Shown piece after piece: positions 1,417-22,499 of a stretch of DNA of 37,921 nucleotides. Position numbers and translations under genes: made by a program. Source of the stretch: Macrostomum lignano (lineage: Eukaryota); NCBI GenBank assembly GCA_002269645.1, contig NIVC01000115.1, positions 1 through 37,921 on the forward strand, in the 5' to 3' direction. How positions within the stretch are numbered: the stretch's first letter is position 1; every line of letters begins with the position of its first letter. The notes beneath the pieces were generated by a model. The model saw only the letters and a list, made by a program, of their open reading frames with translations, was not told the DNA's origin and did no database searches.

Positions 1417-1732
1417 CTAATCTGCAGATCAACTGAATTTTATGCACTTTTGAGTTGGCTATTGTGCTACTTGACAGGAAAAAAACAGACGACGCAATCT
1501 ACGCCACGCCCGCGTTGCTCATCTTAACTGTGGGTGGGGACAATTCGCGTCACAAAGTCCTAGTTTAGTCTGGTGAGGAGAGAGCAGCTGAAAGTTATGA
1601 GTAGGGTTGGATTAAAGCTGCCACCTGTTGAAATGTATTATGACGATGACATGCAAATATCATTGAAAAGCTACCCTGTAACCATTTCAGGTTTTGCTCT
1701 GCACCCCATTGACTAAAACAGCGCTAACGGAC

Positions 1733-2062
1733 ATGGCTCTTCGCCGCTGTCACCGCCTCTGCAATGTGATCGGCATAGCCAAATACGTTTTTCTTACCTG
1801 TGTATCACTAATCACCTGCGGAGTCATAGTTGGCGGTATCCTAGCTTATTTAATCATTCTGCCGTACTACCGAGAGGCGCGATTCGAGCAGACCAGCTGC
1901 GTGTACCTTGGCGAAGAGATGAAGCGTATTATTGACTGCGAAAGCAAGTGCGCCAAGGATAGAAGCAGCTATCCCTGCTACATGGTCAGGGTCAACATCT
2001 CGGGCGTGCCTGAGCAAGGTGTACTGTTTGAAAATTTTCTCACTTATCTGGAGCAAGATAAG
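1733..2062 (+). CDS. KCNMB: BK channel beta subunit-like protein A, coding exon 1 (TM1 and first half of extracellular loop)
   Basis: MALRRCHRLCNVIG, hydrophobic TM1, then TSC, CESKC and YPCYMVRVN. Donor AAG|GTAACT at 2062/2063, phase 0. Confidence 0.85.
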
Positions 2063-2530
2063 GTAACTTTGTTGAAGAAACTGCACTGTTCAGTTTCTGT
2101 TCCTGAAATTGTGAAACATCTAATCTTTGAAAAAATGATATATTCATCAGAGTTGCCTAACGTGTAGGATCCTCTTTTGTTTCTGTATGAACCTTATTCA
2201 AAATTAAACAAATCTCCGACGAAAAATAAAATACAGGTTAGGTCAGAGAAAAACCTTAAAATCTCTGACCCCCTGTGTAGTGCGTACACTCACGAATGTA
2301 CATCTATTTAACACCAAAGCAAAGCCAATTAACCACCCCCCGGAAATCACTGACGCAGTGACGCTCCATTCTGGGCCAGACCTGAAAACAATTCTTACCC
2401 CCCTGCTGCGCCTCCGCCCCCCTCAATTGAAGAAATGTTTAATGTACATCTAAATATAGGTGGAGAGATACCCACTATTTCTCGGACCGCATGTGTACAC
2501 TCACGAATGTACATCTAGTCAACGCCATAG

Positions 2531-3270: not shown

Positions 3271-3588
3271 TCGATGCATAGCATCTTGATCAGACTGATC
3301 GACACTCAATCAATGAACAAGAACAGAAAAAACAGAAGCACTAGCTATGCATGATGCTGTTGTCATTTTCTCTATTTTCTCGAAAAATTATTTCATACAT
3401 TTTACATTTTACAGCAAGAAAATTATCGGCTTAAAAGCGCACAAAAATTTGGTTTTCAATAACGAAACGCACCGTCATACTTACATTGATTTAAAGACTT
3501 CTTCTAAGATATTAAACCAATTTGCTTAAATTCTGATAGAATAGCTAAAACATGATCTCTGTTCCTGACAGTAGTATTATGAGCATTT

Positions 3589-5330
3589 GACGATCAGACC
3601 GACGCTCGATGCCACCTCGACCAGCCTGTCGATCTGGCGCTGGGCGCCTTCAACGGACGAGGACAGGAGGGCGAGGTCGTCGGCGTAGCCAAGCACGCTC
3701 AGGCGCTTTTCGCCGTGTCGGCGACCGATGCGTCTGCGCAGCAGGAAGCCGTCATTAGCCGAGGGGAGTGCGGTCCGAAGCACCCAGTCCAGCAGCAGCA
3801 CGAAGAGGAACGGCGCTAGCGTGTCGCCCTGCAGAACTCCTGATGAAGTATCGAACAGGTCAGACAGGCCGTCCGCCGTCACCACAGCAGCTCGAGTATT
3901 GCAATACAGCGCCATGACTGCGTCGATTAGCTGCTGGGGTACCCGGTAGGCTCGAAGGACAAAGGGAAGTGCGGCTCTCAACACCGAGTCAAACGCCTTT
4001 CGAAAGTCAACGAAGACAATGATCAGCGTAGACTGGCGGATGCGCGCCTCCTCGATGACCCGGCAGAGTGCGAGGATCTGTGTCACTGTACCGCGTGTTG
4101 CGGCCGGAATCCGTTCTGCTCGTACCGCAGGTACGGGTCCAGCACCGACTGCAGACGATCGAGCAGCAGCCGGTTGAAGAGCTTCGCGGTGCAGGACATC
4201 AGCGAGATCCCGCGGTGGTCTTCTTTCCGCGTTGTCCCTGCCTTCTTCGGGATCGGCACGATGTGCGCGACGGTCCACTCGGTTAGGCGCAGGAGCGCCA
4301 GCGAGCACGTGGTTCATGACGCCTGTGACCTGGGAGGGCACACAGCGGAGCCGCAGCGCTTCGACCGGGACTTCGTCGGGGCCGAGCGCCTTGCCGCCTG
4401 ATGTTTTCCGAGCGAACAGCACAACGTTCTCCTTGGTGACTGGTCTGGTGCAGAAGTCCTCCTCAGCTGGGAGCGGCGTGTCCAGTGGGAGCGCAAAGCT
4501 GGCGGGCAGCGGCGACGCGGGCGCGTTCACGATGCCGGCGAAGAAGTCGCGCAATTCATTCCTGCGCTCCTCCGGGGTGTCGCCGGCCAGGTTCAGCGCC
4601 ACGCGCTTTTTGCGCCCGTCAGAGTCCGGACGGCCGTCCATACTGCGCGGCTCTTCACGTCGGGGCCGGCTGCAGTGATGGACCTAATGGCGTCGTTGAC
4701 AGCGGCCTGCTGCCGCTCGTCAAGAAGGCGCTCAAATGCGTCTTCAGCGTCGCCTGTGGGCCTCCGGTTTCTGCGGAGTCGCTCGATGTTGAGCCGCGCC
4801 TGCCTGATGATGGGGTCGCTCTGCCAGACAGGCAGCGATTTCTGCGCTGGTCGCATCAGCGGGACCGTCTGCTCTGCAGCGGCTCTAACGGCGGTGCTGA
4901 TGTCGGAATACTCCACCTCGCGCTGGTATCCAAGCGCGCCGACGAAGGCACCCGCGAATTGACGCTTCACGCGGGTGTCCAACAGTGCGCGATAGTAGCG
5001 CCGTGGCCGCTGCTTTGGCGGTCGGTAGAGCTGGTCGCGGAGCCGCAAGTCGCAGATCAGGAGTCGGTGGTCTGACCGGAGAGCCAGCGGAGCCATGGTG
5101 TCGCAGTTGGTGACGCGGCGGCGCTCGCGAGTGCGAACCAGCGCATGATCGAGTTGCGCCAGTCTCCTCGTGGCATTCCGCCCGCGTGCGTTCCGCCGCC
5201 TTCTCTTGCAGCCCGCAAAGGTGACCAGGCGGGCAGGGGGCTTGCGGAACTGGGTGTTCGCGGACACCAGATCCAGCCGGTCAAGCAGGTCCTCCAGCGC
5301 ATCGGTATTGGCGTCCTCAAGCGCAACATG
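3589..5330 (-). pseudogene. Inverted retroelement segment: APE endonuclease C-terminus and RT core, with several frameshifts
   Basis: Endonuclease motifs NTQFRK, QLDHALVR and SDHRLL; RT motifs FVDFRKAFDSV, GVLQGDTLAPFLF and GYADD. The frame changes near 4610, 4280 and 4095. Confidence 0.85.
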
Positions 5331-5332
5331 CA

Positions 5333-5984
5333 CAGGTGCTGACTGTGCCGGCCGACATCCCAGCGGACCTGACGTGCCGCGGCGCAGACTGGCAGACGAC
5401 CAAGCTCGCACGCTGCCAGCGGTTCACCTACCTCGGCGGTCTGGTGCCCCACGTGGAGGAAGACCTCCGGCGGCGCAGGGGATTCGCCTGGGCGGCCTTT
5501 CGTTCGATCCGAGCCGTCCTCCAGTCTGAAGCGCTGCCCGACCGCCAGAGGGCTCGGCTGTGGCAGGCGGTGGTCGAAACCGTCCTGCTCTACAACGCCG
5601 AGACGTGGACGCTGACGGCTACGCTAGAGCGCTAGACGCTAGACGTTACGCTAGAGCGGCAGCTGGACTCGGCGCACTCAGGACTGCTCCGTGCGGCCTT
5701 TCGAGCTGACGAGAGCGTCGGGACCGAGGCCCTGTACGATCGGGCCAAGCTGCAGCGCCCGTCCACCATCCTGCGCCGGTGGCGACTTCAACTGGCGGGC
5801 CACGTGATCCGGGCCGAGGGCTACTGCCCCCAACCTGTTCAGGACGTCCTGCTGCTCACCTTGCAGGGTCCGTTCAGGCGGGGTCTGGCCCGAACCCGTC
5901 GATACGTGGACTGCCTGCTGTGCGACGCTGGGGCGCCCCGACACTGACTTCGTTCGCTCCCAGGCTCTGCGGCGCGCCATCTGA
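5333..5984 (+). pseudogene. Non-inverted 3' retroelement segment: RT thumb and C-terminal region, interrupted by a 27-nt insertion containing a stop
   Basis: VLTVPAD..FTYLGG, RRRRGFAWAAF, VLLYNAETWTLT and RLQLAGHVIR. Confidence 0.8.
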
Positions 5985-7493: not shown

Positions 7494-7949
7494 CTGATTG
7501 GGGCGGAGTTGAGGGGTAGGAAAATTCAAATGACCTGAATGTACATTTAGGGTAGAGGGAGGCCAGAAGTGTACAGTAAGGGTTTGAAATAGCTCATATG
7601 TACAGCGAAAGGCAGAGATCGAGAGACCGATGATGCGCAGTGAAGTTTGGAAAGGGAATGTATGTACATTTGGAAAGAATGATGATGTACAGTGAAGGGC
7701 AGAAGGGAATGTACATAGATTAAGGGCAGGGAGACGCACCGTGATGTGCTTCATTGAAGAGGGTGTTTCTGTTCATTCGGAGGAAGGTTTTTAGAAAGAT
7801 AGTGACCTGAGTATGTACAACAGTTGCTCTTTTACCTTGGGTTGCGATAGGGGCCTCGCGGCCTATTCGCGGCGCCTGCGCCCCCCGTCAGTAGTAAGTA
7901 AGTAAGTATGTACAACAGTTTGGCTGAAATTATTCGTTTGTACACACAC

Positions 7950-8294
7950 CTCGTACACGTCGGAAAACGTCAAGTAGTTCTCAAACAGAGTTCCAGCTGT
8001 TGACAGACCAGACACGTTGACCCGAACAACGTAGCATGGGAATCTGCACTTCTCCTTCTTGCACAAGTAGCCATAGCTTTCCCGTTGGTTGCGCATGCAA
8101 TAGTGCAAATCTTCGCCAAGATATTCGCAGCTGGTCGGTTGAAATTGCGACTCGCGATAGTACGGCAATATGATGAGATAGGCAAGGATGCTGGACACTA
8201 TTAAACCGCAGGCGATCAACGATACGCAGGTGAGGAATACAATCTTTGCCAAGCCGATGACGTTGCAAAGTTTGTGGCATCTGCGTAAAGCCAT
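7950..8294 (-). CDS. KCNMB: BK channel beta subunit-like protein B, coding exon 1
   Basis: MALRRCHKLCNVIG, TM1, FPCYVVRVNVS. Donor GAG|GTGTGT, phase 0, at the same intron position as paralogue A. Confidence 0.85.
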
Positions 8295-12435: not shown

Positions 12436-12712
12436 TCAGGACTCCTCTTGCAGGAAATTGCTCGGCACGAGACCCTCGGCACCATTTCGTTCTAACCGGC
12501 CCATTAGAAAGCCGTCGTCGTCCATTGGTCCCAGTGCGATGATCACGTCGCCAGCGACAAAGCTGAGCTCCATATCGGAGTCAACATTGGGGCTAAGCTC
12601 CTTGGGATCGTAGTCGTATAAAGCTACAAGTCGGCGAAGCGGCGTTGCACCATTTGCTGCTGACGAGGACGGTTGCTGCTGTTGCTGCTGATGGAGTTGC
12701 TGCTGCTGCTGC

Positions 12713-12909: not shown

Positions 12910-12964
12910 CTGCGGTGGGGAAAGGAAATGGAAGAAAAAAATTGAGGAAAATCTCACATTGATC

Positions 12965-13162
12965 ACCCCCCTGAGTCACTGCCATTCCCTCCTTGATCCT
13001 CCACTGAGTCACCGCCATTCCCTCCTTGATCCTCCACTGAGTCACCGCCATTCCCTCCTTGATCCTCCACTGAGTCACCGCCATTCCCTCCTTGATCCTC
13101 CACTGAGTCACCGCCATTCCCTCCTTGATCCTCCGCTGAGTCACCGCCATTCCCTCCTTGAT
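12965..13162. repeat. 33-bp intronic tandem repeat, ~6 copies
   Basis: ACTGAGTCACCGCCATTCCCTCCTTGATCCTCC units. Confidence 0.9.
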
Positions 13163-13213
13163 CCCGACACCCACAGCCCTTGAGCACACCCCAGCACAGC
13201 GAATTCAACCAAC

Positions 13214-13902: not shown

Positions 13903-14007
13903 CTGGAGGGTTGGCAGTCAGTTCTATGCTTGAGCGATTTCCGATGCATATCGTTGCAATAAGCTTAGTGAAATAAGACAACTGGCACTCTGATCCTGGC
14001 TTCTGTC

Positions 14008-15150
14008 ATATGACTCCATGTCCCTGTCATATGACTCCATGTCCCTGTCATATGACTCCATGTCCCTGTCATATGACTCCATGTCCCTGTCATTTGACTC
14101 CATGTCCCTGTCATTTGACTCCATGTCCCTGTCATTTGACTCCATGTCCCTGTCATATGACTCCATGTCCCTGTCATATGACTCCATGTCCCTGTCATTT
14201 GACTCCATGTCCCTGTCATTTGACTCCATGTCCTGTCATATGACTTCATATGATCTCCTTAATCCCTGTCACTCTCATCTCACTAATCCCTTACACTCTG
14301 ATCTCCTTAATCCTTGTCACTTTCATCTCACTAATCCCTGTCACTCTCATCTCACTAATCCCTGTCACACTCATCTCACTAATCCCTGTCACACTGATCT
14401 CACTAATCCCTGTCACTCTGATCTCACTAATTCCTGTCACTCTGATCTCCTTAATCCCTGTCACTCTGTTCTCACTAATCCCTGTCACTCTGATCTCACT
14501 AATCCCTGTCACTCTGATCTCCCTAATCCCTGTCACTCTGATCTCACTAATCGCTGTCACACTGATCTCCCTAATCCCTGTCACACTGATCTCCCTAATC
14601 CCTGTCACTCTGATCTCACTAATCCCTGTCACACTGATCTCCCTAATCCCTGTCACTCTGACTCCCTAATCCCTGTCACTCTGATCTCCCTAATCCCTAT
14701 CACTCTGATCTCCCTAATCCCTGCCACTCTGATCTCACTAATCCCTGTCACTCTGATCTCCCTAATCCCTGTCACACTGATCTCCCTAATCCCTGTCACT
14801 CTGATCTCCCTAATCCCTGTCACTCTGATCTCCCTAATCCCTGTCACTCTGACTCCCTAATCCCTGTCACTCTGATCTCCCTAATCCCTGTCACTCTGAC
14901 TCCCTAATCCCTGTCACTCTGACTCCCTAATCCCTGTCACTCTGATCTCCTTAATCCCTGTCACTCTGATCTCACTAATCCCTGTCACTCTGATCTCCCT
15001 AATCCCTGTCACTCTGATCTCCCTAATCCCTGTCACTCTGATCTCACTAATCCCTGTCACTCTGATCTCACTAATCCCTGTCACTCTGATCTCCCTAATC
15101 CCTGTCACTCTGACTCCCTAATCCCTGTCAGTCTGACTCCCTAATCCCTG
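14008..15150. repeat. Compound minisatellite: 21-bp (TGACTCCATGTCCCTGTCATA) array followed by 24-bp (TAATCCCTGTCACTCTGATCTCAC) array
   Basis: 21-mers at ~14008-14237, 24-mers at ~14250-15150; shared core TCCCTGTCA. Confidence 0.95.
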
Positions 15151-15237
15151 TCACTCTGTACCTCTGTCCCTGTACCCGCCCTGTCACTCTGTCCCTGTAC
15201 CCGCCCGAAAGACAAGAGAAAGAAAGCAAGAACTCAC

Positions 15238-15322
15238 GAATTTCAGGTACAGAAACATTCTTTGACAGCCGTTTGTGACCTTGTCTGTAGGCTCTGTAAT
15301 CTTCTGTAGGCGATTTGCCAAC
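15238..15322 (-). CDS. RIMBP2: RIM-BP small exon (VGKSPTEDYRAYRQGHKRLSKNVSVPEI)
   Basis: Strong acceptor TTTTTTATTCCAG| and donor C|GTGAGT. At 85 nt it bridges the phase-0 upstream exon to the phase-1 downstream exon. Confidence 0.8.
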
Positions 15323-15503
15323 CTGGAATAAAAAAAAACAATTTCATATAATATCAAATAAATGAAATGAAATGAAATAACTAAATTAAACAGGACAAGA
15401 AAAGTAAATCACTGAACAACACCAAGTAGAAAAACGAATTATAAGAATAAAAATGACTACAAGCCAACCAACGCCACACTGAAGCCGTCACCATGATAGA
15501 AAA

Positions 15504-15509
15504 TTTATT
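15504..15509 (-). terminator. Intronic polyadenylation signal AATAAA for the alternative terminal exon
   Basis: About 53 nt after the stop at 15562, followed on the minus strand by a GT-rich stretch (GTGTGGCGTTGGTTGG). Confidence 0.6.
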
Positions 15510-15561
15510 TATCAAGTGCCATAAAACAGGTTCCTTGCCACCTCAACACGAAAGCTCCACC

Positions 15562-17859
15562 TCAGCTGGAGCCTTCGCCTCCTCCGGCGAGGTTCTTCGG
15601 GTCCAGCTTCTTGAACATGCTCGCCGTGCCCTCGCCGAACGCTTCAAATCTCTTCTTGGTGTCCCCACCGAAGGCGTCGAACTTTTTCTTAGTATCCTCG
15701 TTGAACGCTGCGAATTTCTTTTTATTTTCCTCGTTGAAGGCTTCGAAATTTTTTCGATTCTCCTCGTTCGCTTCGCGGATCTTTTCGCCCGTCTCATCGG
15801 CGATTTCCTCCACTTTTTCTTGGAATTCGTGGAAGCCTTTCTTTAGCCGGCCTAAGAAGCTCGAGTCCTCGGGATCGTTGGGATCGCCTTCGGCACCTTC
15901 AACACCTTCGGCACCTTCAGCACCTTCGGCACCTTCAGCGCCTTCAGCAGCCGCAGCTTCAGCAGCCGCAGCTTCAGCAGCCGCAGCTTCAGCAGCCGCA
16001 GCTTCAGCAGCCGCAGCTTCAGCAGCCGCAGCTTCAGCAGCCGCAGCTTCAGCAGCCGCAGCTTCAGCAGCCGCAGCTTCAGCGGCCGCAGCTTCAGCAG
16101 CCACAGCTTCAGCAGCCGCAGCTTCAGCGGCCGCAGCTTCAGCAGCCACGGCAGCCTCCTCTTCAGGCGTTGGCAGGGGTTCACCCCTAGGGCCCCGCTG
16201 CCTACCCTCGGCCGCTTCGTCGACTGTCCGACCAAACTCGTCCAACAGTTCCCCGCCGGGTCCTCGGACAACCTGTCCGGTGGATTTGTCTTCGAGCACG
16301 CCGAACTCGTTGACCCGCCAGCCGCACTCGGAGGCCAGCAGATGACCGCTCGCCGGGTCGCGAGGCGCGCCGCACACCGGGCGACACCGAGCGTCGAAGT
16401 AGCGACCCTGGGCGTCTCTCAACGGCGCCCCGGTTGAGGCGTCGACCAGCAGGCCGAATTCGTTCTCGCGTCTTTCTGCCGAGTCAATAACGGCTTGACT
16501 GTCGGCGTCAACAAGCTGCTGCTCGTCGGCCAGACAGACTTTCCGGCAAGCCAGCGGCCGACCTCCGGCGTCGAGCAGCTCACCGTTTGGCCCAAGCACG
16601 GGCTGCCCGGTGTCCGAGCTGGTCAGCACTCCGAGCTCGTTCGGCTCGGCCGGCGACACCAGACTGCCGTCCGGGCGGCGGACTCCGTGCACCGGACGAC
16701 AATCGGAGTCGAAAAACTCGCCGGACGGACCTCGGACTGGCCGGCCGGACTCGTCCAGCAGGACGCCATTGTCGTTGACGCCGCCAGTTGGCAGCGGCGT
16801 GCCAGTCGACGTGTTCAACAGTCGGCCAGTGGACGCATCAAGCCGGGCCCGGCGACAATCGATTGGCCGGCCGGACGGGTCGAGCAGCTGGCCGTCCGGC
16901 CCCGGCTCGCTCAGCACGCCGTAGTAGTTCGGCTGCTGGGCCTCGTCGTCGACCAGCTGGCCGTTCGGCAGCCGCCGGCCGTAAACGACGGCGCCGTCGG
17001 GAGGGCCATAAAATTCTCCGTTTAGTCCGCGAAGCGGCAGCCCGCGCGAGTCGGCCAGCACGTTGAACTCGTTGGCCACGGCGTCGGCCACTTCGTCCGG
17101 CGAGTCAACACGACGACAGGCGATTTCGGCTGCCGTTGCGTCCAATAGTTCGCGTCCGGTCGGCCCGGACAGTGGCCGGTTGTCTGTCCCGGACACTAAC
17201 ACGCCGAAGTAGTTGAGCTTTGGAGGCGGGTCGTCTGGCTTGCACGCCAGCAGACGGCCATCGTCGGGATGTCGGAGGCCGCCGAGAGCGGGCCGGCCGT
17301 CGGCACCAAAGAACTCGCCGCGGCTGCCTCGCAGCGGCACGGAGCCGACAGTCAGGATGCCGTGTGAGTTCGCCGCGGCCTCGGGAAACGCGTCCAACGG
17401 AGCAGCACCGTCCGGGACTGGCCGGCAGGCGATCGGCCGACCGTCCGAGTCGATTAGAGTGCCGTCTGGTCGGGTGAGAGCCAGGCCGGTGTCCAGATTA
17501 GCCAGGACGCCGAACCAGTTGACGGCGGGCGGCGGGTCGCCCAGCAGCTCGCCGTCGGGGCCGCGCGGCCCGTAGACCGGCTGGCCGTTGGAGGAGAAAA
17601 ACTCGCCAGACTGGCCTCGGATCGGGACGCCGTTTTCGTCGATTAGCACGCCGTTAGCGTTGACGCTTGTAGCGTCGCCGAAGGTCGTAGAATTATTAAA
17701 TCCGTTAGACTCCGGTACAAGACGGCCGTCCGGGGTTCGAGTCGCGATTCGACAAAGTATGGGAGCGCCGTCTGGCGGAGATCGGAATTCGCCGCTCGGA
17801 GTTCGCAGCGGCTGACCGGTTGAGGGATCAACCAGGATGCCGAATTCGTTGGTTTGGGC
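15562..17859 (-). CDS. Putative alternative terminal exon of RIM-BP (765 aa): 11 NxxG[VI]L repeats, (EAAAA)n spacer, 11-mer amphipathic tail
   Basis: Open 2298-nt GC-rich frame whose only Met lies near the C-terminus, with an in-frame TAA just upstream. Acceptor CCTTGTGTCAG|GCC is phase 0, matching the donor at 18831; own polyA signal. Confidence 0.75.
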   Translation of the reverse strand, partial: AQTNEFGILVDPSTGQPLRTPSGEFRSPPDGAPILCRIATRTPDGRLVPESNGFNNSTTFGDATSVNANGVLIDENGVPIRGQSGEFFSSNGQPVYGPRGPDGELLGDPPPAVNWFGVLANLDTGLALTRPDGTLIDSDGRPIACRPVPDGAAPLDAFPEAAANSHGILTVGSVPLRGSRGEFFGADGRPALGGLRHPDDGRLLACKPDDPPPKLNYFGVLVSGTDNRPLSGPTGRELLDATAAEIACRRVDSPDEVADAVANEFNVLADSRGLPLRGLNGEFYGPPDGAVVYGRRLPNGQLVDDEAQQPNYYGVLSEPGPDGQLLDPSGRPIDCRRARLDASTGRLLNTSTGTPLPTGGVNDNGVLLDESGRPVRGPSGEFFDSDCRPVHGVRRPDGSLVSPAEPNELGVLTSSDTGQPVLGPNGELLDAGGRPLACRKVCLADEQQLVDADSQAVIDSAERRENEFGLLVDASTGAPLRDAQGRYFDARCRPVCGAPRDPASGHLLASECGWRVNEFGVLEDKSTGQVVRGPGGELLDEFGRTVDEAAEGRQRGPRGEPLPTPEEEAAVAAEAAAAEAAAAEAVAAEAAAAEAAAAEAAAAEAAAAEAAAAEAAAAEAAAAEAAAAEAAAAEAAAAEGAEGAEGAEGAEGVEGAEGDPNDPEDSSFLGRLKKGFHEFQEKVEEIADETGEKIREANEENRKNFEAFNEENKKKFAAFNEDTKKKFDAFGGDTKKRFEAFGEGTASMFKKLDPKNLAGGGEGSS

Positions 17860-17994
17860 CTGACACAAGGGGCGCGCATGCGGTAGTGGTGGTGGTGGTG
17901 GAAGGGTGCTGGTTTAATAGTGCAAGCTGTGCTTTGATTGACAGGCACGGAATAACGATGCTTCGCATATTTTTATGTGCAAAGGAGGATAAAA

Positions 17995-18530
17995 AGTTTA
18001 CAGGGCAGGGATATAGGACAGGGAAACTATGGGTAGGAGTTGGGGTGGGTGTTTTATACACCCAGAGGAGGCTATAGTGTACATTAGGGCAGGAAAACTA
18101 AGGGTAGGAGTTGGGGTGGGTGTTTTATTCACCCAGAGGAGGCTATAGTGTACATTAGGGCAGGAAAACTAAGGGTAGGAGTTGGGGTGGGTGTTTTATT
18201 CACCCAGAGGAGGCTATAGTGTACATTAGGGCAGGCAAACTAAGGGTAGGAGTTTGGGTGGGTGTTTTATTCACCCAGAGGAGGCTATAGTGTACATTAG
18301 GGCAGGCAAACTAAAGGTAGGAGTTGGGGTGGGTGTTTTATACACCCAGAGGAGGCTACAGTGTATATTAGGGCAGGAACAGCGAAGCTAGGAGTTGGGG
18401 TGGGTGTTTAATACACTCAGAGGGAGGCTACAGAGTAAATTGGGGCAGGAAAATTGAGGGTAGAAGTTGGGGTGGGTGTTTTTTACACCCAGAGGAGGCT
18501 ACAGTGTACATTAGGGCAGGAAAACTGAGG
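17995..18530. repeat. 71-bp intronic tandem repeat, ~7-8 copies
   Basis: GTGTACATTAGGGCAGGAAAACTAAGGGTAGGAGTTGGGGTGGGTGTTTTATTCACCCAGAGGAGGCTATA units. Confidence 0.92.
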
Positions 18531-18830
18531 GTAGGAGTTGGCTGGGTGTCTTATAGAACCTGAGGAAGTTTTACCTACATGTAATAAGTAACGATATTGG
18601 CTAAACTCTAAAGAGTTAGCAGGTTAGTATATATACATAAAATGTTACTTATAGAAAACGTTTAAATAGCACAATCTACAACAAAATAAACGAGAGTAAG
18701 TTGATATCTTTTGTAAAGTTAAGACACAATCTATACAACATCAAAAGGCTACCACAGACACGTGAGAAAGGAAAAATCACTACGGATTCTAAGAAAGCTA
18801 AAATTGCTGCCAAATTGGTCTAGGCGTTAC

Positions 18831-19424
18831 CCTCGGATTGCGCGAAGCGGACAACAGGTGCTGCCTGCGCAATCGATGGAATTTCGATGGACTAACGCTG
18901 CGACTTCGAATCATTCGGTGGTCCATCAGGGCTGAGGTGTTCGAGGCGGCGGCGGCGGCGGCAGCTCCTCGCCTACTGGAGCGATGATGCTGGGAATGAG
19001 GCTGGCGCAGGCTGCCATGCTGAGGCCAGTCATCCTGCTGCTGCACCAGCTGCTGATGATGAGGCGGCAGCTGCCAGTCATCAAAGGAGGCCTGCATCTG
19101 CAGCTGCCTGTAACCGCCGCCGCCGCCAACAGGGTTGGCATTGTCGTACATGGAGGCGGGACCTGCAACGCCGTCGTTGGGATGACGAAGCAGGCCGCCC
19201 TGCTGCTGCTGCTGATGGTGATAAGCTTGATTATAACCGGCATGAACACCTGTTGGCGACCCGGTTAGATGAGGCGGCATACCAGCGGTTCTACTGAACC
19301 TGGACGACGGGCCAAGATTCAAAGGCCTACCAGACGTGGAAAGTCTTTGTTGTTGCTGCTGCTGTTGTTGTTGCAGGAGCAGAAGTTGCTGCTGTTGCTG
19401 CTTTCCGAAAGCCAGATGACGCTG
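18831..19424 (-). CDS. RIMBP2: RIM-BP exon: Q/H/S-rich disordered linker after FN3-3 (198 aa)
   Basis: NAGNAG acceptor ACAG|CAG, donor AGG|GTAACG; open 594-nt frame, phase 0 to 0. Confidence 0.75.
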
Positions 19425-19974
19425 CTGTTTTTTTTGTTTAAAACAACGGCATTTGTTTGGCGTTGTAGGATTTGAGGTTTATGGGATTTGGGGATTTAAA
19501 GGGAACAGGGTGGGTGAGAAAAAGAATTATTTTTATCCCTTTTAGAAGCTCTTGTAAAATAAAAAGTAAAAGTAGTTTTAGTTCAAAGGAAGCAACGTCG
19601 CATATCGCCCATAAACCATAGGAGACCTATAGTTGCAAGATTACGAGTATTAGGATTAAGAATCTCTGTGAATTCCAACATGCCGATAAAGTTACGAGTA
19701 ATAAATAATTATGAATTAGCCTAAAAAAGCAAATTTTCTAAAATAAACGATTTTTTATGTATGATGCGCAATTGCGGCACGATGGTTTTAAATAAAATTG
19801 ACTTTCGATACATATCGGTACAACGAGAAAACTCTTTTTTTCGATGGTTAAGTTTTAAAAAATGCAATAATGACTTAGAATCGAGGCAATAGAAATTCTT
19901 TAATTTCGATAGAAATTAAGTCATTTATAAACAATCCTTTCTCCGATACATACCAGGAAGTTTGGCAATTCCTG

Positions 19975-20133
19975 AAAACTGTTCTTTCGATACATATCGG
20001 AAAGTGTGGGAAATTCTTAAAAACTGCTCTTTCGACACATATCGGAAAGTGTGGAAAGTCTTGAAAACTGCTTTTTCGATACATATTGGAAAGTGTGGGA
20101 AATTCTTGAAAACTGCTGTTTCGATACATATCG
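19975..20133. repeat. 45-bp tandem repeat containing the dyad CGATACATATCG, ~3.5 copies
   Basis: TTTCGATACATATCGGAAAGTGTGGGAAATTCTTAAAAACTGCTC units. Confidence 0.85.
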
Positions 20134-20152
20134 GTAGCAAAAATGAACTTAC

Positions 20153-20594
20153 ATCTTCTGGCCTAGGCAAATCGATAGACGAATTAGCGGCAGACAGAGT
20201 CAGCGAGCACGGCGGGTCCGAGTCTAAACTCTCCACAGTCTGACCATTGTGAGTACCGACTGTGCGCACGGTCAGGAAGGCGGTGTGAGGTGGCAGGGAG
20301 TTCTGGGCGAGCAGGCAGTGATCTGAGTACGCGTCCAAGCACTCCGTGACCCGGTGCCTGCCGTCAGCGTACACTGCGTAGCCGGTGACCCGAACACCGT
20401 TGGACACGCCGTCGGAGTTGGCAACGGTGACCGGTAGCCAGGTGACTAGCAGGGAATGGTCCTGAGGCCGGGTCGATTTGAACGTCCAGAGGAGCGTCGG
20501 GCAGGCCGCCGGGCGTGGTTCGAAACTCCAAGGTGGCGGTGAGGAGAGGCACGGAGGTGCCCGTAGTTTTCGGAGGCCTGGCCCGCACGCACAC
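20153..20594 (-). CDS. RIMBP2: RIM-BP exon: end of FN3-2 and FN3-3, with an apparent frameshift near 20465
   Basis: VCVRARP..PDAPLDVQIDP in one frame, then PQDHSLLVTWLPV..VTGYAVYADG..ESLDS in another. Length 442 nt between phase-0 splice sites. Confidence 0.85.
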
Positions 20595-22030: not shown

Positions 22031-22499
22031 CTGTAGATAAGTAGGCGCTAGGTGCGAGTCGCGATCCTTGCCAGTCAGCAATGTACAGGCCGGGTCTTTG
22101 GATGTCAGACCCCTGGTAGTACTGATCGCACACAGATCCTGTGCCTCTCCTTCGGATTAATACCCTCAATAAGTGCTTTAGTCTTCTCGCCGGCACTAAC
22201 CGAGCACTTGAATTTGCCATCAACGTAGACGTGATAAGCAGATAGAGGGTCGTGCATCAGCACGCTAGTCGGATCGTGAGCCGGGGGTCGCCAGCCAATC
22301 ACAATCGAGCTAGCCAGTTGTCTTTCTAAAGCTAGAAATCTAGGCGGAGAAACAGTATCATCCGAGAGACCCTCGGCTCGAATGATTTCCTCTTCGTAGG
22401 AGTAGGTTCCGCCCGTAGACAGCTGCTCAGCGGCTGGATAGGCCGAGGAGACCGGGTCGTAGCCGGAGAATCCAGTCTCAAATGCGGCAACATCGTCGT
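22031..22499 (-). CDS. RIMBP2: RIM-BP exon: linker and FN3-1, with an apparent 1-nt deletion near 22119
   Basis: SPPRFLALERQLASSIVIGW..KTKALIEG..HRICVRSV, then TRGLTSKDPACTLLTGKD..LAPTYLQ in a shifted frame. Length 469 nt, one short of the required phase. Confidence 0.85.

Follow-up and report, generated by a model that had tools for sequence, protein, structure and literature searches.

A 765-codon terminal exon without a start codon in an intron of the Macrostomum lignano RIM-BP gene: a candidate alternative last exon encoding an orphan module

How might a 765-codon reading frame that has no start codon of its own be expressed, when it lies in sense orientation within an intron of another gene? 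This question is raised by a 37,921-nt stretch of the Macrostomum lignano genome (GenBank assembly GCA_002269645.1, contig NIVC01000115.1, positions 1 to 37,921; hereafter the window), the minus strand of which carries a gene for the active-zone scaffold RIM-BP and, in one of its introns, the open reading frame (ORF) considered here. The domain plan of RIM-BP is conserved across animals, and its C-terminal pair of SH3 domains connects RIM with calcium channels where transmitter release takes place. We conclude with high confidence that the intronic stretch is a genuine and intact protein-coding terminal exon, in the same orientation as its host. Our tentative reading of its use is that it serves as an alternative last exon of RIM-BP, a reading that is consistent with the sequence and unproven.

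The frame is uninterrupted for 765 codons, from 17859 to 15565 on the minus strand, when counted from the junction cag/GCC at 17859, and it closes at a TGA stop codon (15564-15562, minus strand) found both in the ORF list and on reading the sequence. The ORF call (15562..17868) counts 768 codons, since it begins at an in-frame TTG (17868..15562, minus strand). The exon's sole methionine is residue 748 of 765, and an in-frame TAA at 17916-17914 lies 18 codons 5' of the junction. The frame thus lacks a usable ATG, no ATG-bearing exon of its own precedes it within the intron, and its start codon would have to be supplied from outside. Its 5' boundary is a 3' splice site (17860..17889, minus strand), where a C/T-rich tract, ...GCGCGCCCCTTGTGTCAG, precedes the first exon base at 17859. 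This acceptor, CCCCTTGTGTCAG/GCC, is in phase 0 and has a pyrimidine fraction of 0.65, the other acceptors of the host gene ranging from 0.29 to 1.0; it is the only AG in phase with phase-0 donors between the TAA and the first repeat unit of the encoded protein. At the 3' end, a poly(A) signal and its downstream element occupy 15457..15509 (minus strand): AATAAA stands at 15509-15504, 52 nt past the stop codon and 182 nt short of the host acceptor at 15322, and a GT-rich element, CAGTGTGGCGTTGGTTGGCTTGTAG, follows at 15481-15457. AATAAA occurs 14 times on the minus strand of the 37.9 kb (0.37 per kb), which gives a chance of about 0.04 of finding one within 100 nt of the stop. Acceptor, ORF, stop, AATAAA and GT-rich element together make up the anatomy of a terminal exon.

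This exon is contained in a 3.5-kb intron of the host gene, 18830-15323, between the donor of a linker exon at 18831 and the acceptor of an 85-nt exon at 15322. The DNA between the donor at 18831 and the acceptor at 17859 consists solely of AT-rich sequence and a 71-bp intronic satellite upstream of the exon (7.8 copies, 18014..18566; repeat family D2, found with Tandem Repeats Finder, TRF). A scan of 18830-17860 for an open frame that starts with ATG and reaches a phase-0 consensus donor found none. Separate ATG-bearing first exons in the intron were considered and rejected, there being five candidates only, all with non-consensus donors and most within satellite copies. An earlier note on this stretch, made from its letters alone, had described an ORF with no usable ATG, an acceptor at 17859 in phase 0 like the donor at 18831, only satellite and AT-rich DNA between the two, and a stop and AATAAA some 180 nt before the acceptor at 15322; all of this holds on re-reading and measurement, apart from small corrections.

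The case that the frame is coding rests on its length, its composition and the conservation of its repeats. When the bases were shuffled 2000 times, the longest open frame, taken over all six frames, averaged 195 codons and reached a maximum of 452, against 768 in the real sequence, and the other five frames of the region contain 10-36 stops each. The G+C content by codon position (0.74/0.53/0.67) resembles that of the host exons, and relative synonymous codon usage (RSCU) correlates with that of the RIM-BP exons (r=0.71-0.75). All eleven repeat units of the product are encoded in a single frame, and at the DNA level they are too diverged to be detected by TRF. Residues that are identical between two units also have identical codons in 49% of cases, compared with 45% expected from codon usage; given this near-equality, the duplications are old and the motif has been kept by selection at the protein level. 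Synonymous sites between the units are saturated, while the protein motif is retained. Shuffle test, codon usage, composition by codon position and repeat conservation thus agree with the long, real coding ORF that had been claimed before, and the confident structure prediction for a double unit, given below, points the same way.

Saturation between the repeats shows past, not present, selection, and would also be expected of a relic that is open yet no longer expressed as protein, either a retrocopy truncated at its 5' end or an exon that was once in use. The missing start codon, the absence of introns across its 2.3 kb and the failure to find a homolog are all compatible with such a relic, and at a distance of 10 kb there is a non-LTR (long terminal repeat) reverse-transcriptase remnant whose composition is similar (RSCU r=0.83). 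We consider this explanation improbable, as all 765 codons are still open while conserved exons and the retrotransposon in the same window have gained frame breaks, and the boundaries of the frame fall at an acceptor and at a poly(A) signal. A retrocopy should carry a poly(A) tail or a target-site duplication, and neither is present; relatives of its parent gene should also exist in other animals, where none was found.

The predicted product falls into three parts. Residues 1-560 (16180..17859, minus strand) form a repeat domain that unit alignment divides into 11 units of about 45-60 residues of two alternating types, with the motif N-x-F-G-V-L...G-x-P-L-R-G-x-x-G-E-F/L...D-G-R-P...P-D-G-x-L; double units are mutually 36-42% identical. 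AlphaFold2 (AF2), given one double unit with the other four as alignment, predicts short beta-hairpins throughout at a mean confidence (pLDDT) of 80; its model of the whole protein, in which hairpins are followed by two long helices, is too poor to use (pLDDT 49). The repeat domain is followed by an (AEAAA)n tract, a putative helical rod at residues 566-639 approximately (15943..16164, minus strand), which is encoded by a 15-nt tandem repeat (TRF, 15942-16147: period 15, 13.7 copies, 96% matches) and is modelled by AF2 as a continuous helix over residues 565-639. Because its 15-nt DNA copies are near-identical (96%), unlike the diverged repeat domain, the rod can be read as a recent expansion, the length of which probably varies between individuals. 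A (GAE)n tract of TRF period 9 comes after the rod (15887-15949, minus strand).

The C-terminal tail, residues 666-765 (15565..15864, minus strand), contains five 11-residue repeats (x-K-K-K-F-x-A-F-x-E-x). Its amphipathic core covers 84 residues (668-751; 15858-15607) and has a hydrophobic moment of 0.35 at 98.2 degrees (z=4.5), a value reached by none of 2000 shuffles, with the five 11-mers in register; AF2 predicts helices at 668-729 and 732-749. The 11-residue periodicity, the F/A/F face flanked by lysines and the strong 98.2-degree moment over the 84 residues are shared with the class-A 11-mer helices of apolipoproteins A-I and A-IV, perilipins, alpha-synuclein and phasins. In contrast to members of those families, the tail has no significant homology to any of them: matches to ApoA-I in the PDB (E=0.013-0.1, with no stretch passing alone) and to PhaP in Pfam (E=0.097) fall below significance and below the Pfam cut-offs. 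The tail may be described as a putative class-A-like helix, of the kind that binds lipid surfaces. The division into repeat domain, rod and tail had already been made from the sequence, and it is borne out by the unit alignment, the AF2 helices and the hydrophobic moment.

Searches for relatives of this module returned little. No Pfam family passed its cut-off, and the beta-hairpin repeat part had no match at E<=1. A word-indexed search of 5.8 billion proteins gave no relative, the query probably being swamped by the alanine-rich repeat. An exhaustive phmmer search with residues 1-560 against 1.84 billion representative proteins gave five weak matches (P0001-P0005), the best at E=1.8e-9 with 33% identity over the repeats. 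These five proteins repeat the same turn motif many times, and are unrelated repeat look-alikes built of short beta-hairpin G-x-L-(I/L)-D-x-x-G-x-P turns; in contrast to the module their repeats are simpler, at 6-25 residues, and they share with it no architecture, Pfam family or structural match. The PDB sequence search with the module gave nothing significant, and a Foldseek comparison of the AF2 double-unit model with the PDB recovered no solved fold (best E=0.42, TM score about 0.2). Known beta-hairpin repeat families, such as RHS/YD and the cell-wall-binding or CROP-like repeats, likewise gave neither a profile nor a structural match. No phage relative was present in PHROGs, and none of any kind in JGI metagenome contigs or viral contigs; bacteria gave only weak look-alikes of the repeats, and viruses gave none. 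On the evidence of these searches the 765-residue product is an orphan, a new family of its own without detectable relatives.

An orphan sequence of this kind could in principle reflect an assembly mis-join or a contaminant placed inside the RIM-BP intron. The G+C content of the exon (0.65-0.68) does contrast sharply with that of the flanking intron, and a satellite array borders the exon upstream. We regard such an error as very improbable, since the other exons in the window are equally GC-rich, the codon usage matches that of the host, the flanks carry ordinary splice and poly(A) signals, and repeat look-alikes are weak in bacteria and absent from viruses. Two further origins were examined and rejected. 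Foreign origin is at odds with the host-like codon usage and the absence of viral and phage relatives. For an origin as a transposon or retrocopy, neither terminal repeats (direct or inverted), nor a target-site duplication, nor a poly(A) tail after the AATAAA was found, and there are no relatives in the 1.84 billion representatives or in the JGI and viral contigs.

The host gene was identified as RIM-BP through Pfam and through tblastn with homologs, in agreement with the earlier identification. Pfam recognizes Ig_RIMBP2 (PF25523; E=4.9e-22) and SH3_2/SH3_9 (E=1e-16 to 1e-17), and the best database matches are 45-61% identical. The domains follow the RIM-BP order SH3-1, three FN3 domains, linker, SH3-2 and SH3-3, thus including three SH3 domains. 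By tblastn, all on the minus strand, SH3-1 lies at 26617-26456 and 24760-24677, FN3-1 at 22383-22028, FN3-2 at 21058-20885 and FN3-3 at 20537-20213; SH3-2 and SH3-3, also placed by Pfam, together take up 13306-13202 and 12918-12445, SH3-2 lying at 13306-13202 and from 12918 on, and SH3-3 ending at 12445. The host thereby shares with the RIM-BP/RBP family (RIMBP1/TSPOAP1, RIMBP2, Drosophila Rbp) its SH3-1, its FN3 domains including the Ig_RIMBP2 type, a variable linker, and SH3-2 and SH3-3. The ORF exon sits within this variable linker region, between FN3-3 and SH3-2, whereas nothing like its module occurs in any of 252 RIM-BP homologs.

The exon structure around the insertion is consistently in phase. 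The FN3-3 exon (20153..20594, minus strand; Ig_RIMBP2 domain by PF25523, with tblastn matches in two frames) ends at the phase-0 donor GAAGAT/GTAAGT. Three mutually in-phase exons (19424-18831, 15322-15238 and 13902-13214) lead from FN3-3 to SH3-2. The first is the 594-nt linker exon (18831..19424, minus strand), with phase 0 at both ends, the acceptor aaaaaacag/CAG and the donor CCGAGG/GTAACG, the last base being 18831; it offers the nearest upstream in-frame donor for the ORF exon. Being a low-complexity linker it lacks homolog support, and it was deduced from its open frame, its composition and its phase consistency with the flanking exons. The second is the 85-nt exon of the full-length path (15238..15322, minus strand), with the phase-0 acceptor TTTTTTTTTATTCCAG/GTTGGC and the donor AAATTC/GTGAGT, and its phase agrees with those of the SH3-2 exon (13902-13214) and of the last exon (12909-12436), as a check by hand confirmed. 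Phase 0 is found at the donors 18831 and 20153 and at the acceptors 19424, 17859 and 15322, as the previously claimed phase compatibility with RIM-BP requires.

The reading frame through the conserved domains of the host is interrupted twice as assembled. Two single-base frame changes relative to the homologs, both absent from the earlier note, were seen in tblastn as homolog alignments that switch frame without a gap in query or genome. The first is in FN3-1 at about 22112-22125 (minus strand), around TCAGTACTACCAGG, where the old frame meets a TGA within five codons; the second is in FN3-3 at about 20458-20474 (minus strand), around GACCCGGCCTCAGGACC, with '...LPDAPLDVQIDPA' and 'PQDHSLLVTWLPV...' in different frames. 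Each break is an assembly error of one base or else a true mutation, in which case this RIM-BP copy is in decay. True mutations would mean that this allele is unable to yield a RIM-BP fusion protein; with errors, which would then occur about once in every 1-2 kb of the coding sequence that can be checked, the intactness of the 2298-nt ORF is unremarkable. The two breaks show that gene models in this region should not be relied on until the assembly has been checked.

The same rate of error bears on the possibility that a start codon has been hidden from view. An ATG with A at -3 (AAAATATGC, 17956..17968, minus strand) lies upstream of the acceptor. It differs from the ORF frame by a single base and opens a frame that has no stop across the junction; because of the one-base offset it is relevant only if a 1-nt indel lies within 17860-17913. 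The ORF would then be an intronless nested gene with its own start at 17968 (MRSIVIPCLSIKAQLALLNQHP...), obscured by one base missing in that interval from the assembly or from this allele. The two frame breaks in conserved RIM-BP exons lend this some plausibility, as they imply indels at about 1 per 1-2 kb of checkable coding sequence, yet at that rate an indel would strike a target of just 54 nt with a chance of only about 3-6%, and the ORF itself is free of frameshifts over its 2298 nt. The first repeat unit begins three residues past a well-formed acceptor, which would have to be coincidence, and the TATA-like ATAAAAAT abuts the ATG and so is unable to act as its promoter. We therefore think a hidden start quite improbable, more so than a relic. 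A 101-codon ORF on the minus strand (17643-17948; 79 codons from an ATG at 17879) runs in a different frame across the beginning of the main ORF. Ribosomes on an unspliced transcript started in the intron would meet this AUG-led frame first, which argues against an unspliced mRNA yielding the module.

The arrangement of splice and poly(A) signals suggests how the exon could instead be expressed through its host. The ORF is preceded by an in-phase 3' splice site and carries its own stop and poly(A) signal ahead of the next constitutive acceptor, as expected of an alternative last exon, and the expression route would resemble that of a gene-trap cassette. The RIM-BP pre-mRNA would run through the intron, the phase-0 donor at 18831 (or that at 20153) would be spliced to the acceptor at 17859, and the transcript would be cleaved downstream of the AATAAA at 15509-15504. 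Skipping of the 17859 acceptor in favor of that at 15322 would yield full-length RIM-BP. The resulting isoform would retain the N-terminal part, SH3-1 and the FN3 domains, with SH3-2 and SH3-3 replaced by the module. Location on the same strand, with only satellite and AT-rich DNA intervening, favors a link to RIM-BP. Furthermore, according to Conrad et al. 1993 in the form quoted in PMC8629364, cis-splicing takes precedence over trans-splicing at an acceptor when the pre-mRNA also carries a donor upstream of it.

The functional side of this proposal can be stated more tentatively still. RIM-BP SH3 domains bind RIM and CaV channels, and the FN3 domains bind BK channels in mammals (PMC6092624), which supports what the earlier note had said on both points. 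An isoform made by a switch of poly(A) site would keep SH3-1 and the BK-binding FN3 domains while exchanging SH3-2/SH3-3 for a lineage-specific module, so that a scaffold that tethers calcium channels may have become one that binds membranes or vesicles. It would lose the RIM- and CaV-binding SH3 pair and gain a repeat surface together with a membrane- or vesicle-binding tail. The models suggest that the added module would then comprise a 560-residue beta-hairpin surface, an alanine-rich helix of about 10 nm, and an amphipathic tail like those of synuclein and apolipoproteins.

Several observations weigh against the alternative-last-exon proposal. The agreement in phase has a one-in-three chance of arising at random, and it is predicted equally by spliced-leader initiation, which is discussed below. 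No RIM-BP with such a C-terminus was found among the 252 homologs, in keeping with the earlier statement that no such RIM-BP architecture was known, and exact-product look-ups for the ORF and for a neighboring ORF returned no record. Flatworm gene models are known to fuse neighboring trans-spliced genes into chimeras (PMC12582326). The two frame breaks lie in RIM-BP upstream of the exon as assembled, and unless each of them is an error of the assembly, the predicted fusion protein cannot be made. The literature on RIM-BP isoforms without the C-terminal SH3 pair yielded nothing usable.

The main rival to a RIM-BP isoform is a separate gene initiated by a spliced leader (SL). The ORF would in this case be an independent gene, nested or operon-like, with SL trans-splicing at 17859 and the AUG of the leader as its start; the product would be a free, cytosolic protein of 766 residues, M-AQTNEF..., possibly made alongside cis use of the exon. 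All reported flatworm spliced leaders end in AUG, and more than 40 S. mansoni cDNAs need the leader AUG as initiator (PMC12582326, PMC9851317); the M. lignano leader ends ...TTGCATG (PMC8629364). Initiation of this kind requires an ATG-less ORF that starts in phase 0 at the acceptor, which is exactly what we observe: the frame begins in phase 0 at 17859 and has no initiator of its own. It shares both properties with the flatworm ORFs of Cheng et al. 2006 that use a leader-supplied AUG, as cited in PMC12582326 and PMC9851317, but differs from those in having an upstream cis donor on the same strand. The general setting is also favorable, as trans-splicing affects 20-30% of Macrostomum genes, many of which sit in operons whose spacers are filled with repeats (PMC8629364, PMC10468722), and on average 66% of the SL acceptor sites of flatworms gave some evidence of cis-splicing too, annotation often fusing such genes into chimeras (PMC12582326).

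Nevertheless, trans-splicing at this site would need a transcript that starts inside the intron and lacks the 18831 donor, for which there is no promoter evidence, and a sense-strand nested gene with a good acceptor would be exposed to capture by the host donor. The acceptor TGTCAG also departs at its second position from the enriched M. lignano trans-acceptor motif [T/C]TNCAG. The window contains neither an SL RNA gene nor the 3' end of the M. lignano spliced leader, and Rfam and tRNA scans of it were empty. Weighing these points, we judge SL initiation unlikely, while treating it as the alternative most deserving of attention. The earlier proposal of a RIM-BP isoform accordingly stands in part: its coding, terminal-exon and phase arguments fit the sequence, and it had not considered that a leader AUG explains the same features.

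Each of the arrangements considered here, whether an alternative last exon, a nested gene or an AUG supplied by a leader, is of a known kind; what is new is the 765-residue module. As in intronic polyadenylation generally, and in its engineered equivalent, the gene-trap cassette, a sense acceptor, an in-frame ORF, a stop and an AATAAA lie in an intron before the acceptor of the full-length transcript. Compared with typical alternative last exons, the homolog-less segment of 765 residues is far bigger, being larger than most whole proteins, and the site is known here from sequence alone. Should the RIM-BP isoform be real, it would constitute a natural experiment in rewiring an active-zone scaffold, in which the SH3 pair is dropped and a large, unrelated and probably membrane-binding module is gained, and it would show how an old gene comes to acquire a coding sequence that is an orphan. 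A nested gene with SL initiation would instead serve as a warning for annotation, as an ATG-less gene of 765 codons would have been missed by pipelines or wrongly fused to its host. By either route of expression the protein represents a new family.

Some further features of the window were recorded. Large minisatellites (14003-15158; 21-bp x 11.8 and 24-bp x 38 copies) fill the intron that separates the 85-nt exon from the SH3-2 exon, and other tandem arrays occur at 12959-13164 (33 bp), at 19944-20134 (45 bp) and elsewhere; these arrays yield long spurious ORFs on both strands. Just downstream of RIM-BP, and adjoining it, is a pair of paralogous ORFs resembling BK beta subunits (1694-2167, plus strand; 7863-8294, minus strand), which match the Pfam family CaKB, one with E=1.6e-6 and 28.4 bits (cut-off 25.1) and the other below the cut-off with E=9e-4; their linkage to RIM-BP may be coincidental. 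The non-LTR retrotransposon remnant is found at 3577-5411 (minus strand), is GC-rich (0.65-0.68), and comprises a 354-codon RVT_1 ORF (3577-4641) overlapping a 272-codon ORF in another frame. The best named relatives of its reverse transcriptase are from Macrostomum lignano itself (E about 1e-69; next named taxon 1e-36), which lends weak support to a flatworm origin, a point on which the RIM-BP identities gave no resolution. The enzyme also matches ENA/JGI metagenome contigs at 63-86% identity, and from these matches it follows that environmental data sets contain DNA from related animals.

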